Of a stretch of DNA of 43,448 bases, positions 29,124 to 34,023 are shown piece by piece. A program made the translations under genes and the position numbers. The DNA lies in the NCBI GenBank assembly GCA_900088475.1, contig FLMG01002728.1, forward strand, positions 1 through 43,448, read 5' to 3'. A model generated the notes under the pieces. That model was not told the origin of the DNA. It saw only the letters and a program-made list of their open reading frames with translations, and did not search any database. The DNA is from Hyphochytrium catenoides. Taxonomy: Eukaryota; Protista; Hyphochytriomycota. The first letter of the stretch is position 1; every line of letters begins with the position of its first letter.

Positions 29124-32100
29124 ATGTCTGTCTTGCCCGACCTTCTGTCTGCGCTTCGGAACGGACCTGAAGAGGAAAAAGTAAAGGCCGCCTTGACGGC
29201 GTTGGAAGAGCTCGCTCACCGTCCAGAAGAAAGAGGAAAGATTGGTGCCTCAGGTGCTCTCTCTCTCCTTCTCCCTTTTCTCTCTCTCTCTTCTTCTTCT
29301 CTCTTGCGAGTTAGAGCTCTCAGAGTGCTCCAGCTTCTCTCTCTCGAGACAGGGAACAAAGGGAAAATAGTAGAAGAGAGAAGCGTTCCCCTTCTTGTCA
29401 ACATCTTGAAAGAGAGAGAGAGCAAAGGAGAAGAGAAATTGCTGGCCATTGCGACTCTTCTCTCTCTTGCTCAACTTAGCGCCAACTCAGTGAAGATAGC
29501 AGAGGAAGAAGGGGCCATTCCTGCCTTTATCCTCTTTCTCTCTCCTTCTCTCCCACTCTCTTCCTCCTCTTCAGATGCGGAGAAAAGAGAAGAAAGAGAG
29601 AGCTTGCGAGAAGCTAAACGCCTCTCTGTCTCTCTCTTAAGCCTTCTCTCTCGCTCTCCTCATTACCAAGTAAAGATCGCTGAGGCAGGAGGCATTCCTC
29701 CTCTCGTACATCTTCTTCTCCCCATAGAAGAAGAGAACAGAATAGGAGAAACATCGACGATCGAAGAGAGAGAGAAGAGAGAGAAAGAAAGAAGCGTTGC
29801 CACTGCAACGCTAGGGAATCTGGCCATAGAATCTGCTAATAAAGTGAAGATAGCGGAGGCAGGAGCTATTCCTCTTCTCTGCCAGCTTCTTCTTCATCCC
29901 TTGGAAGGTCTCAGAACCAATGCAGCGGCTGCCTTGCAGAACTTGGCTTCCAATGGGCAAAACCAGGAGAGAATTGCTGAGGCAGGCGCGATTCCTCTTC
30001 TTTGCCAGCTTCTCTCTTCTCTCTCTTGTTCTTCTTCTTGCTCTTCTTCTTCCTCTGAAGCGCTGAAGGCAGCCGTAGCAGGTCTGCTTGCCAAGCTCGC
30101 ACAGAATGCTCAGAACCGGGAAAAAATAGGGGAAGAGAGAGACGGACTAACGGCGCTTGTCTCTCTTCTCTTGGCTGCCTCAGGAGGAGAAGCAAAGGAC
30201 GGGAAAGAGATGGCAGCGGCTGCGCTGGGTAACTTGGGTCTGGACGCTGAGGTCCGGATGCGTCTTGGCGGCGAGACAGAGGCGATCCCGGCTCTAGTGC
30301 GTCTTCTGCAGCATGGCAAGGCGGGAGAGAGAGGAAAGGCCGTCGCTGCTCTCGATAATTTGGGTCTCTCTCCTGGGAACCTGGGCAAGATGATGGAGGC
30401 GGAGGTTGTCTCTCCCTTGGTGCAACTCTTACACAGTGGAAATAACAGTGAAGAGCAAAAGGCCCGGGCCGCGGGGCTGCTCCAGAGCTTGGCGGCGGCA
30501 AACATGGCTAATCAGGGTAAGATCATGGACGCAGGCGCCATCGTCCCGCTGGTGCAGTTGATAGAGAAAGGCAGTGGACCTTCCGCAGTGGCCGCCGCCG
30601 CCGCTGTCGGCGCGCTGGCGCAGGATAACCCGGTTAATCAGGTCAAGATCGTAGAGGCAGGCGCGGTGCGGCCTCTCGTCCAGCATCTCTCACATGGCAA
30701 TGAGGAACAAAAGACACGGGCTGTGGTCACTCTGTCTCTCCTCGCCGGGTCAGAGACAGAGATTCAGAAGAAGCTGGTTGCCGCTGGGATAGTGGGGCCA
30801 TTGATAATGTTCCTGGAAGGGAGACGTACCTATGTTACCCAGATGGCAGGCCTTCAGATGCTCCGTCTCTTCTCTCTTCTGGAGAGAGAGACACGGCTCA
30901 AGATAGCAGAGGAAGGAGGATTGAGGCCTCTCATAGACATTGCTCTCTCCCTGGACGAAGAAGAAGAGAAAGAGAGAGGAGAGAAAAGAAGGAAAGAAAG
31001 AGAGAGAAGGGAAGATGATGGAGAGAGGCGAGGGCAAGAAGAAGAAGAAGCAGAAAGAGAGAAAGAGACACGAACCGAAGCGCCACTCTTAGCACAAGGT
31101 ATACTCTGTACGCTTGCATGGGAGCGAGAGATTGAAGAAGAGATAGAGAGAGAGGGCTTCTCTCTCCTCAGAGACATCCAAACCCAGTCATTCACTACCT
31201 GGACAACGGCACATCTCTCTCTTTGCCTGCAGTCTCTAGGTCTCTCTCCTCTTTTTCTCTGGCAGCAGAAGATTGATGGCGCCGTCTTTATAGAGATCTG
31301 CGGAAGGAGAAGCACGCTCGACACTTTTGGCTTATCAGGAGATGTCATCGACTCTGTGATCAGTCTGGCGGCGGTCTTGGCTGAGAAAAAGACGTGGAAG
31401 AATGTGTCAGATGAGGATGTTGTCTCTCTTCTTGTGCTTCCCTCCTCTTCCCCGTCTTCGTCTTCTTCTCTCTCTTCTTACCTTAGTCTGCTAGAAGAAA
31501 GCATGAGCTTCTGGAGCATCCGGCAAGTTTCTCTCTGGCTAAAGAAGAGAATTCTTTTGAAAGACGAGGAGGAAAGAACTTCTGGACAACGGCGAGGAGG
31601 AGGAGAGAAGAAAGTGAGAAGAAGCACATCCTCTCTCGTTTCTCCTGCTTTTCTAGAAGCACTAGAGAAGACTCTAACCAAGGGAAAAGTATGCGGTGCA
31701 TTGTTTCTCTCTCTCCTGAAGAAGAGAGACTTCCAAAAGCTTCTTCCCCAGGTTCTCGCAGATAAACTGAGGCTTCAAGCGCTTCTCGACAGCATCGCAA
31801 AGGAACTCTTTCCTAAGGAAGAGGCGCCATGTAAAGAACGAGAAGAGAGAGGAGAGAAAGAGAGAGAAGAAGAGGGGATGACTAATAAGAAGAGACTGAG
31901 CCCAGACGAGGAGAGAGAGAGAGAGAAAGAGACAGAAAAGAGAGAAGAAGAGATCGTCACTCCTAGGAGAAAGCTCCGAATGGCCCAGGAGCTTGACGAG
32001 CTCACGCAGTGGCTGACCGCTTACCTTTCAAGAGACTTTGCCCGGAAATACTCTGAAGATTTCTTCCGCTGTGGCTTCAATGCAAAGACAATTGTCCAGG

Positions 32101-33027
32101 GAGAAGAAGTGAAAGAGGCCATTGAGACAGGAAAGCTCATTCTGGAGGAGAGAGACAAAGAGAAATTCTTTGGTCTCTTTGAGCTGGAGAGAGAGAGAGA
32201 AGACGATGGTGATCCTTCAAAAGGAGAAGAAGAAAGGAAGAAGAAGTTAAGGTACGACGTCTTTCTCACTCATGACTGGGGGAGAGACGAGCTGGGGAGA
32301 GACAATCATGCTCGCGTGGCCAGGATGAATGAGCTTCTCAAGGCAAAGTACGTAAGCGTCTTACCTAGGGTTTCTACATCTCTTGCTTCTCTCTCTCTCT
32401 TTCTGTCTCTCTCTCTGTCTTTCCATTCGCCATCTCTCTCTCTCTCTCTTCATGTCTCACGCAGGCTCTTTTATCGCCTCATCCCTCCTGTCTTTTCCTC
32501 CTTGTTGTCTCTTCTTGCTAACTTCCTAATTAACCCTAACCCGAATGTCCTCTCTCTGTCTCTCTGCGCCAATCTCTCTCTCTCTCCGTGGCAATCTCTC
32601 TCTATCCCTCTGTCCCTCTCTCCGTGTCAATCTCTCCCTCTCTCTTTCTCTATCTCTATCTTTCTTCTCTTTCTCTCTCTCTCTCACAATCTCTCTCTGT
32701 CCCTCTGTCCCTCTCTCCATGTCAATCTCTCTCTCTCTGTTCCTCGCTCTCTCTCTTCTCTCTCTTTCTCTTCCTCTCTCTCTCTGTCTGTCTCTCTCTC
32801 TCTCTTTCTTGCTCTCTCTCTCTCTCCTCCTCTCCCTGGCTCTGGTCCGCACAGTGGTATCATCACATGGTTCGACATGGATCGGATGCAGGGAAATATT
32901 AACGAACAAATGGCGAAAGGGATCGAGTCTTCCGCCGTCGTCGCTGTCTTTCTGACTCAGCGGTACATGGATAAGGTCAGCCTCTTTCTCTCGTGCAATA
33001 CTTTATCTTTCCTCTCCCTCTTCCTGT

Positions 33028-33063
<36 letters not shown>

Positions 33064-34023
33064 ATCAATGTTCTGTATCTCTCTCTCTTAGTCTCTCTCT
33101 CTCCCTCTCTTTGCTGGGGATAGTTCTTGCGGTTAGATTCTGCCTATCTGGCGCCAATCAAGTGCCTTCTCCCTCCATTTCACATTTCTTTTCCACATTT
33201 CTTTTCGCTTTCTCACTCTCTCTCACCTTAGTCCCGGCACCTTCTCTCTCTCGTTGTTCTCTAGATGTGCCTTCTCAATGCATCTCCCTTTCCATATCTT
33301 ATACATGCGTTACTTTCCTCTGTGTGCATCTTTTCTCCTCGCGTCCTCTACCCTTTCCCGGCCTCTCTCTCTCTCTGTCTTTTTAGGTTTTGTCTTTCTC
33401 TCTCCCTGTGAGCGTGCGGTGCCTCTCTTATTTCTCGCTTTTTTCTAGTCTCCCTGCTCTCTCTCTGTTAGCTCGTTCTCTCCCTTCCTCTACGGTCGCT
33501 CCTTCTCGCCTTTCCCTCTTTTCCACACTCTCTCTCCCTCTACTCTCTCCCAACTCTCTCTCCCATCTCTGGTGTCTTTCTCTCTCATTCTCTCTCTCTC
33601 CCTGTTTCTCTCTCTGTCTCTCTCCCTCTTGTCCTCTCTCTCATTCTTTTTCTCTCTGTTTCTTTCTCTCTCTCTCTCTCTCTTGTGGTCTCTCTCTCTC
33701 CTTTTCTCTCTCTCTCTCCCTGCGTCTCTCTCTCTCTCTCTCTCTCTCTCCTCTCTCCCCAGTCGATCTAAAGCTCCATATGACAGGTAAACAGCGAGAA
33801 CTGGGCTGACAACTGCAAGTTAGAGTTCAACCACGCGACGAGGAAACACACGGCAAAGAGAATGATTCCCCTTGTGATGGAGAAGAGAATGAGAGACCCA
33901 AACACCTGGAGCGGCACTGTCTCTCTCATTCTGGCGGGAGAACTCTATGTTGACCTTGTTGAGGATGAGACGTTTGAAGAGAGAGCCCAGCAGCTGGCTA
34001 AGATGATAAAGAGTCACTTGTGA
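29124..34023 (+). CDS. Armadillo-repeat / SAM / TIR protein (SARM1-like architecture), 3 exons, ~1,193 aa
   Basis: Exons 29124-32347, 32855-32975, 33787-34023, phases consistent. About 13-14 ARM repeats (AA.AL.NLA....N...IAEAGAIP.L..LL). SAM-like segments WTTAHLSLCLQSLGL..QKIDGAVF..LDTFGL and WSIRQVSLWL..KVCGALFLSL..DKLRL. TIR: YDVFLTHDWG..GIITWFDMDRMQGNINEQMAKGIESSAVVAVFLTQRYMDKV..DNCKLEFNHA..MIPLVME..LYVDL. Confidence 0.88.

Follow-up and report, generated by a model that had tools for sequence, protein, structure and literature searches.

Among the animal TIR enzymes that cause cell death, SARM1 is, to our knowledge, the only one that is well understood. In the animal proteins of this type (human SARM1, Drosophila Ect4/dSarm and C. 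elegans TIR-1), a helical-repeat N-terminus is followed by a SAM region and by a C-terminal TIR domain that carries a glutamate (Glu). Here, we describe a gene with a similar layout in the protist Hyphochytrium catenoides, in which the N-terminal part consists of armadillo (ARM) repeats. The gene lies at positions 29124-34023 of contig FLMG01002728.1 (assembly GCA_900088475.1); the whole stretch of this contig that was analysed, 43,448 nucleotides (nt) in length, is referred to below as the window. A preliminary description of the locus had claimed a SARM1-like order of ARM, SAM and TIR with a Glu at the catalytic position, and this order was recovered in our gene model. Our overall reading is that the encoded protein combines 13 canonical Arm repeats, one demonstrable and probably two more SAM domains within a helical middle region, and a C-terminal TIR of a widespread subfamily, and that it works in outline like SARM1, a reading that we regard as evenly poised. 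SARM1-type TIRs (group 24) have been described as metazoan (PMC7075850), and the SARM1 TIR clade corresponds to clade 8 of a more recent classification (10.64898/2026.04.30.722052). A 2026 preprint mentioned SARM1-like sequences in amoebae and algae, and also several eukaryote-only TIR clades that are uncharacterised.

The likeness to SARM1 extends beyond the order of the domains. By eye, the BB loop of the family to which the window TIR belongs (D/E-R-M-x-G) resembles that of SARM1 (E-K-L-E-A-G), and in both proteins beta-C is separated from the catalytic helix by a long stretch. However, the differences are also considerable. The ARM region of the window protein comprises ~600 amino acids (aa) of canonical repeats that are recognised by Pfam (Arm, ARMC5 and PUB), while that of SARM1 is shorter and divergent. 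Judged by profile search, the window TIR comes from another sequence family, which is marked by an H-D-W-G..G-R-x-N-H loop. In addition, the catalytic motif reads D-N-C-K-L-E in the window, with an asparagine (Asn) four residues before the Glu (position -4), whereas it reads D-W-V-H-K-E in SARM1, with a tryptophan (Trp) at this position (W638 and E642 in the human protein). The window protein may also hold three SAM-like units, with long charged linkers between them.

Proteins of the same domain content were also found outside animals. When residues 62-1074 were used in an ESM Atlas feature search, animal SARM1 clusters came first (0.86-0.83), and two Arm+SAM_2+TIR_2 clusters (729 and 732 aa, with 57 and 59 members; commonest phylum Chlorophyta) were retrieved at 0.82, together with a mollusc Arm+TIR_2 cluster. 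A shape search with P0075, a metagenomic relative that is described below, aligned one Chlorophyta Arm+SAM_2+TIR_2 cluster over its residues 34-343. Throughout this study, the language-model neighbours of the ESM Atlas were treated as leads only. The Chlorophyta clusters resemble the window protein in being non-animal and in that a single chain unites SAM and TIR_2 with PUB-like Arm repeats of the Pfam type; they differ in being ~460 aa shorter and in bearing automatic names only, no study of them having been found, and this comparison was made by domain labels and neighbour scores. Because these clusters were found, the ARM-SAM-TIR design outside animals is already present in databases under automatic names.

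The sequence indicates that the locus is one intact three-exon gene, encoding a predicted protein of ~1,190 aa; all of its features given below are on the plus strand. Exon 1 (29124..32347) runs from the ATG to the first splice donor and comprises 1074 full codons plus two bases (AA) of a split Asn codon. The ATG at 29124 is the first after an in-frame stop and starts a 3.2-kb open reading frame (ORF), and the donor (AA/gtacgtaag) lies at 32348. Intron 1 (32348..32854; 507 nt, GT..AG, phase 2) ends in the acceptor cacag/T, the T of which completes the Asn codon. Exon 2 (32855..32975) encodes the second TIR piece, with beta-B, the BB loop (D-R-M-Q-G), alpha-B and beta-C, and ends in the donor AAG/gtcagc. 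It is followed by intron 2 (32976..33786; 811 nt, GT..AG, phase 0), whose acceptor is tgacag/G, and by exon 3 (33787..34023), which encodes the third TIR piece, from the catalytic helix up to the C-terminus, and closes with the stop codon TGA. Both introns are largely (CT)n-like on the sense strand (83% pyrimidine in intron 1 and 82% in intron 2, with 8% A and 9-10% G).

Evidence for this model came from the TIR domain itself. In a local six-frame scan of the window, the three TIR pieces matched positions 2-37, 35-77 and 76-154 of a hidden Markov model (HMM) of the family. Moreover, when the pieces were aligned with TIR domains from 33 homologues, they abutted without a gap at either junction, the residue of the split codon alone being absent. 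Since the pieces are gap-free across both junctions, the gene model is strongly supported. Pfam TIR_2 (PF13676) matched exon 2 (E 1.7e-4, 22.5 bits) and exon 3 (E 1.4e-3, 19.6 bits) at consecutive stretches of the profile (positions 25-64 and 59-121, respectively), and exon 3 matched the family HMM with an E value of 8e-27. Because the introns split the domain, each piece alone falls below the 28-bit TIR_2 cut-off, while the homologues that align without gaps score 36-57 bits. The claim that the TIR is complete only after splicing was thus borne out.

The armadillo-repeat region (29124..30950) was recognised by several Pfam models on exon 1. Arm (PF00514) matched in 5 stretches with an E value of 9.7e-36 (121.1 bits against a cut-off of 20.6), ARM_ARMC5 with 4.3e-35 (121.9 against 79.9) and ARM_PUB with 1.1e-16 (61.6 against 33). 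We counted 13 repeats between aa 38 and 608, with a spacing of ~42 aa and the core K-I-x-E-A-G-x-I-P-x-L-V-x-L-L. The 13-14 repeats that had been proposed from the sequence agree with this count, and the repeats, which had been described as Vac8/PUB-like, are of the canonical Arm/PUB/ARMC5 type. Because the repeats are of this type, the ARM part looks independently recruited relative to SARM1. Several ARM loops carry short low-complexity insertions that are either CT-rich (Ser/Leu/Pro) or GA-rich (Glu/Lys/Arg); a CT-rich coding stretch of this kind lies at 29258-29305, within the first repeats. The region is followed by a low-complexity linker rich in Glu, Lys and Arg (30951..31100; GA-rich DNA, 77% purine), in which the frame is open and GT..AG borders are absent. 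We also noted that several coding loops of exon 1 have, in frame, the CT-rich composition of the local introns or its GA-rich complement. In-frame introns within the low-complexity stretches of exon 1 were considered and rejected; because these stretches lack GT..AG borders, the CT-/GA-rich insertions were read as coding expansions.

Searches with the region before intron 1 revealed the family to which the TIR belongs. A phmmer search with the 415 aa of this region against 1.84 billion representatives returned 94 matches. In ~90 of these, with identities of 43-77%, the match was confined to the 32 residues at the C-terminal end of the query (R-Y-D-V-F-L-T-H-D-W-G-R-D-E-L-G-R-D-N-H...). These residues make up the first TIR piece (32250..32347), with beta-A, the HDWG..GRDNH loop and alpha-A. 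The loop had been described as a peculiar insert (HDWGxDxxGRDNH); instead, it proved to be a near-invariant signature, and on sequence grounds it is the hallmark of a large, widespread and uncharacterised eukaryotic TIR_2 subfamily. Members occur in oomycetes, cnidarians, sequences of the marine protist transcriptome collection MMETSP and the genome of the window gene, that is, in protists and some animals. Their TIRs are joined to various partner domains, in the combinations SAM-TIR, ankyrin-SAM-TIR (an MMETSP transcript), TIR-SAM, ankyrin-TIR and PAN-TIR-kinase, and with MORN and DUF285. A word-index search of long proteins with the TIR N-terminus retrieved two proteins annotated with TIR only (P0124 and P0125), which lack ARM by Pfam. 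By eye, another subfamily member, the oomycete protein Aphanomyces invadans A0A024TC72 (Table S1, 10.64898/2026.04.20.719644), appears to begin with a SAM-like part, followed by the TIR and then by helical repeats of ARM/HEAT-like type, which would be the same domain vocabulary in another order.

The window TIR pieces are 38-56% identical to subfamily members, and all of the 20 near-invariant residues are kept (F, L, H, W, D, H, V, L, W, D, T, Y, K, D, C, E, F, M, E and W), near-invariant being defined as columns of the family alignment that are at least 90% conserved. One of these columns (E88 of the family alignment) contains the Glu at the catalytic position, encoded by the GAG codon at 33823..33825 within D-N-C-K-L-E-F. 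When the family profile was compared with the Protein Data Bank (PDB), the best match was Cat1 (CRISPR-associated TIR 1, PDB 9mud; E 3.2e-8), the effector of a bacterial type III CRISPR system that acts as a nicotinamide adenine dinucleotide (NAD+) hydrolase (NADase), followed by BtTir, AbTir, RPP1 and ROQ1, which are likewise TIRs that cleave NAD+, and by RPS4 and RUN1. Cat1, the best solved sequence relative, aligned over profile positions 19-111, and the C-x-x-E of the family fell on its C-W-D-E(-L), so that the GAG codon occupies the position that had been assigned to it. However, Cat1 is bacterial, is fused to a cyclic-oligoadenylate sensor, forms filaments, has Trp at -4 and lacks ARM and SAM domains. 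Two further proteins, Clytia hemisphaerica A0A7M5V3G2 and Aphanomyces astaci A0A397ARF8, carry TIRs of the same H-D-W-G ... D-N-C-x-x-E-F subfamily with the catalytic-position Glu, but in other domain contexts and without the E-L-G-R extension of the loop.

Between the ARM region and the TIR, the preliminary description had noted two SAM-like segments and a possible third, and it was the third that gained support when their fold was checked. Segment 3 (31995..32186), which lies directly upstream of the TIR, appears by homology to be a SAM domain. Together with the TIR N-terminus, it matched P0075 by BLASTP (E 2e-11) from S-R-D-F-A-R-K-Y-S-E-D-F-F onward, and hhalign placed it on residues 114-216 of P0075 with 97% probability (E 5e-11) when it was compared with the P0075 group. 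Residues 104-161 of P0075 are in turn recognised by Pfam SAM_2 (E 4e-6), with SAM_1/SAM_2 assigned to residues 108-156, and are modelled as a five-helix SAM with a predicted local distance difference test (pLDDT) score >90. Segment 1 (31191..31391; by-eye pattern W-x(3)-L...LGL...IDG...LG) and segment 2 (31503..31811), which has an insert of ~30 aa after its first helix, are unproven; a second low-complexity linker rich in Glu, Lys and Arg (31812..31994; 72-82% purine) separates them from segment 3. Both fit the SAM pattern W-x3-L/V-x2-L...L-G/S-L...I/V-D/C-G-A...L-x-x-L-G/L by eye, and segment 2 is 31% identical to segment 1 in a MAFFT alignment. As a lead, an ESM Atlas feature search with 31179-31811 placed 65 of the 100 nearest named clusters in the SAM_1/SAM_2 set (score 0.86), and the remaining listed domain sets were mostly SAM-type families.

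Other searches with this part of the protein returned little. Exon 1 had no match to the Pfam SAM models (PF00536 and PF07647) at E<=1, and neither had any of the three segments, searched individually, at E<=10; a phmmer search of the PDB with the SAM region found no match. A single-sequence AlphaFold model of the middle region had a pLDDT of 42 and was uninformative, being equally poor over segment 3. A word-index search for homologues of the middle region found nothing, and a metagenome scan with the SAM region found no relatives. In the exhaustive phmmer search with the 415-aa middle region, P0075 was the sole true relative beyond the TIR stretch; P0001 was rejected as a spurious repeat match.

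P0075 is one of four SAM-SAM-TIR proteins that were found in metagenome assemblies (P0075, P0095, P0096 and P0097; 343-390 aa) and that are the closest detectable relatives of the unit formed by segment 3 and the TIR. Their TIRs are 38-56% identical to the window pieces, their SAM aligns with segment 3 and the near-invariant residues are identical; they differ in having a single N-terminal helix in place of the ARM region. The gene for P0075 itself (343 aa, L001:1501-2532) has no introns and lies on a metagenome contig of 329 kb (ENA ERZ25074548). An AlphaFold model of P0075, built with a 50-row alignment (mean pLDDT 90.4), predicted that a long helix is followed by two bundles of five helices each, at residues 47-100 and 104-161, and that a disordered linker leads from these to the TIR at 185-343. 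In a Foldseek search of the PDB with this model, the top 17 matches were all full-length human SARM1 or C. elegans TIR-1, aligned over ~300 columns with E values of 5e-6 to 6e-4. Model residues 46-338 aligned to SARM1 residues 415-700 (SAM1-SAM2-TIR), the predicted tandem SAM corresponding to SARM1 415-548. The match to the SARM1 TIR crystal structure by VIA-align had a Z score of 15.9 and a root-mean-square deviation (rmsd) of 2.6 A over 136 of 140 residues. Because the margin over the SPARTA and Hydra TIRs was small (15.9 against 15.6-15.2), this modelled match points to a common architecture and not to clade membership. Nevertheless, the SAM-SAM-TIR core may, judging from the P0075 model, share ancestry with that of SARM1 rather than having been assembled independently. 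The proposal of an independently assembled SARM1 analogue fits the ARM part, which looks independently recruited, but may not extend to the SAM-SAM-TIR core.

In the ESM Atlas, the P0075 TIR came closest in structure to two clusters that bear the label Nucleocytoviricota (rmsd of 2.1 A over 150-156 residues), and the TIR subfamily may thus, on the strength of modelled structures, be present in giant viruses as well. A scan of viral contigs with the TIR (a single protein and exact peptide patterns) found no TIR of the subfamily.

Several results weigh against the reading of the window protein as a SARM1-like NADase with a tandem SAM region. In the SAM region, segments 1 and 2 scored near zero against a small family SAM HMM, not above an ARM control; hhalign gave E values of 0.1 and 0.28, respectively; the two segments showed no significant match to each other by BLASTP; and a profile built from the three segments found no SAM in the PDB. 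Segments 1 and 2 thus failed every sequence test, and only the language-model lead favours them; we still consider it somewhat probable that both are SAM-like folds. In the TIR, SARM1 was not retrieved from the PDB by the family profile even at E<=10, and position -4 is occupied by Asn in the window protein and in the majority of family members, while a few others have Tyr or Phe. In SARM1, AbTir, BdTIR, HopAM1 and ThsB', position -4 is Trp, Tyr or Phe (Table S4, 10.64898/2026.04.20.719644), and the SARM1 Trp binds ligand together with the Glu (PMC7075850). Furthermore, when the TIRs of A0A7M5V3G2 and A0A397ARF8 were expressed in isolation in E. coli, the entry 'Active' was left blank, with no cyclic ADP-ribose (cADPR) isomer or NAD+ depletion recorded (Table S4, 10.64898/2026.04.20.719644). 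Beyond these results, ARM autoinhibition and the oligomeric state are pure inference, and they are deduced, as is the chemistry, from domain content and homology. NADase activity of the window TIR is therefore doubtful, and the Asn at -4 and the two family members with no recorded products weaken the NADase reading but do not refute it.

These results bear on the possibility that the TIR has no catalytic role and serves as a scaffold or adaptor, which would build complexes through TIR-TIR, SAM-SAM and ARM-partner contacts and in which the Glu would be structural or otherwise retained. The TIRs of TLRs and MyD88 assemble signalling complexes in this way. The replacement of the pocket aromatic by Asn in most of the family and the silence of two of its members in a heterologous screen are what a scaffold would predict, and Toshchakov and Neuwald noted that a conserved Glu is not always coupled to enzyme activity (PMC7075850). 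However, conservation of the Glu, the preceding D-x-C and the R-M-x-G of the BB loop reaches 90% or more even between very distant taxa, a pattern that suggests that an active site has been conserved. In addition, Cat1, which is nearest in sequence among the solved structures, is a TIR that cleaves NAD+. The silence of the two tested TIRs also carries limited weight, given that isolated TIR domains often require oligomerisation, even forced oligomerisation, for activity. In the same screen, only 16 of the 90 non-plant (animal and protist) eukaryotic TIRs were active, and several TIRs of unicellular eukaryotes made cADPR or depleted NAD+ in a Glu-dependent manner (10.64898/2026.04.20.719644). 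We therefore regard a scaffold function as unlikely, though it deserves serious consideration.

If the TIR is an enzyme, it might instead generate a signal, a cADPR isomer or another nucleotide that acts on a separate effector, rather than deplete NAD+ as an executioner, as in the case of the Thoeris, plant and cADPR-producing protist TIRs. Most of the active eukaryotic TIRs in the screen made cADPR without depleting NAD+ (10.64898/2026.04.20.719644), which is in line with this scenario, but no candidate receptor (SLOG, EDS1-like or similar) was seen in the window, and no product is known for the H-D-W-G TIR subfamily. We hold this scenario to be rather improbable, slightly more so than a scaffold. 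The least likely of the rival explanations is that the gene is dead, as an unexpressed or decaying paralogue, or that its model is incorrect, with unrecognised in-frame introns in exon 1 that would change the protein. The match in composition between the CT-/GA-rich stretches of exon 1 and the local introns could be taken in its favour. However, the frame of 1074 codons is open and holds all of the domain matches of exon 1, the low-complexity stretches lack GT..AG borders, the TIR junctions are residue-exact against 33 homologues and none of the invariant residues has been lost; a dead or mis-modelled gene thus seems very improbable.

Under the reading that the protein works in outline like SARM1, oligomerisation would depend on its SAM region, and the ARM solenoid would restrain the TIRs, either by separating them or by holding them inactive, as long as no ligand is bound. 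Because the repeats are of the canonical Arm/PUB type, this ligand would more likely be a protein or peptide than nicotinamide mononucleotide (NMN) or NAD+. The released TIRs might then pair to form composite active sites using the conserved Glu, and these sites would consume NAD+ or make a signal derived from ADP-ribose. The setting could be an immune-type or cell-death response in the protist. A more specific version of this scenario is that the protein is a protist cell-death or immune executor, either convergent with SARM1 or sharing an ancient SAM-SAM-TIR core with it; that its ARM region senses a protein or peptide, for instance a pathogen or viral factor, and not the NMN/NAD+ ratio; and that its TIR, from an uncharacterised eukaryote-wide clade with Asn in place of the pocket Trp, may have a different product or substrate. 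In this detailed form, the proposal is speculative and we consider it unlikely to be right as a whole. Overall, most of what had originally been observed at the locus was borne out; the original interpretation was reasonable in outline, but it overstated the novelty and the enzymology.

The surroundings of the gene were also surveyed. In the six-frame scan with the family HMM, the TIR of this gene was the only one in the window. A cluster of TIR or immune genes was considered and rejected, given this single TIR and given that the neighbours recognised by Pfam are an NHL-repeat protein and a glycosyltransferase. The former is a plus-strand ORF of 1453 aa (7102-11460), the C-terminal end of which carries NHL repeats (Pfam NHL, E 3.5e-45). 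The latter is a minus-strand ORF fragment (36400-36933) that matches Glyco_transf_49, a dystroglycan-type glycosyltransferase (E 4.7e-21); it probably represents a single exon of a gene that lies on this strand, downstream of the TIR gene. No Rfam family was found in the window. The locus was present in DNA runs from 2011 and 2017, and a soil metagenome shared 8% of its words.

The interest of the gene is limited by the presence of its architecture in green-algal clusters and by the mention of non-animal SARM1-like sequences in the 2026 preprint. However, the origin of SARM1 is debated, and an ARM-SAM-TIR protein from a protist is a natural comparison. With Asn at the pocket position, the subfamily would also be well suited to testing the requirements for NAD+ cleavage by a TIR. 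More broadly, the gene raises the questions of whether the SAM-SAM-TIR core is ancient and whether different helical-repeat sensors can be plugged onto it.

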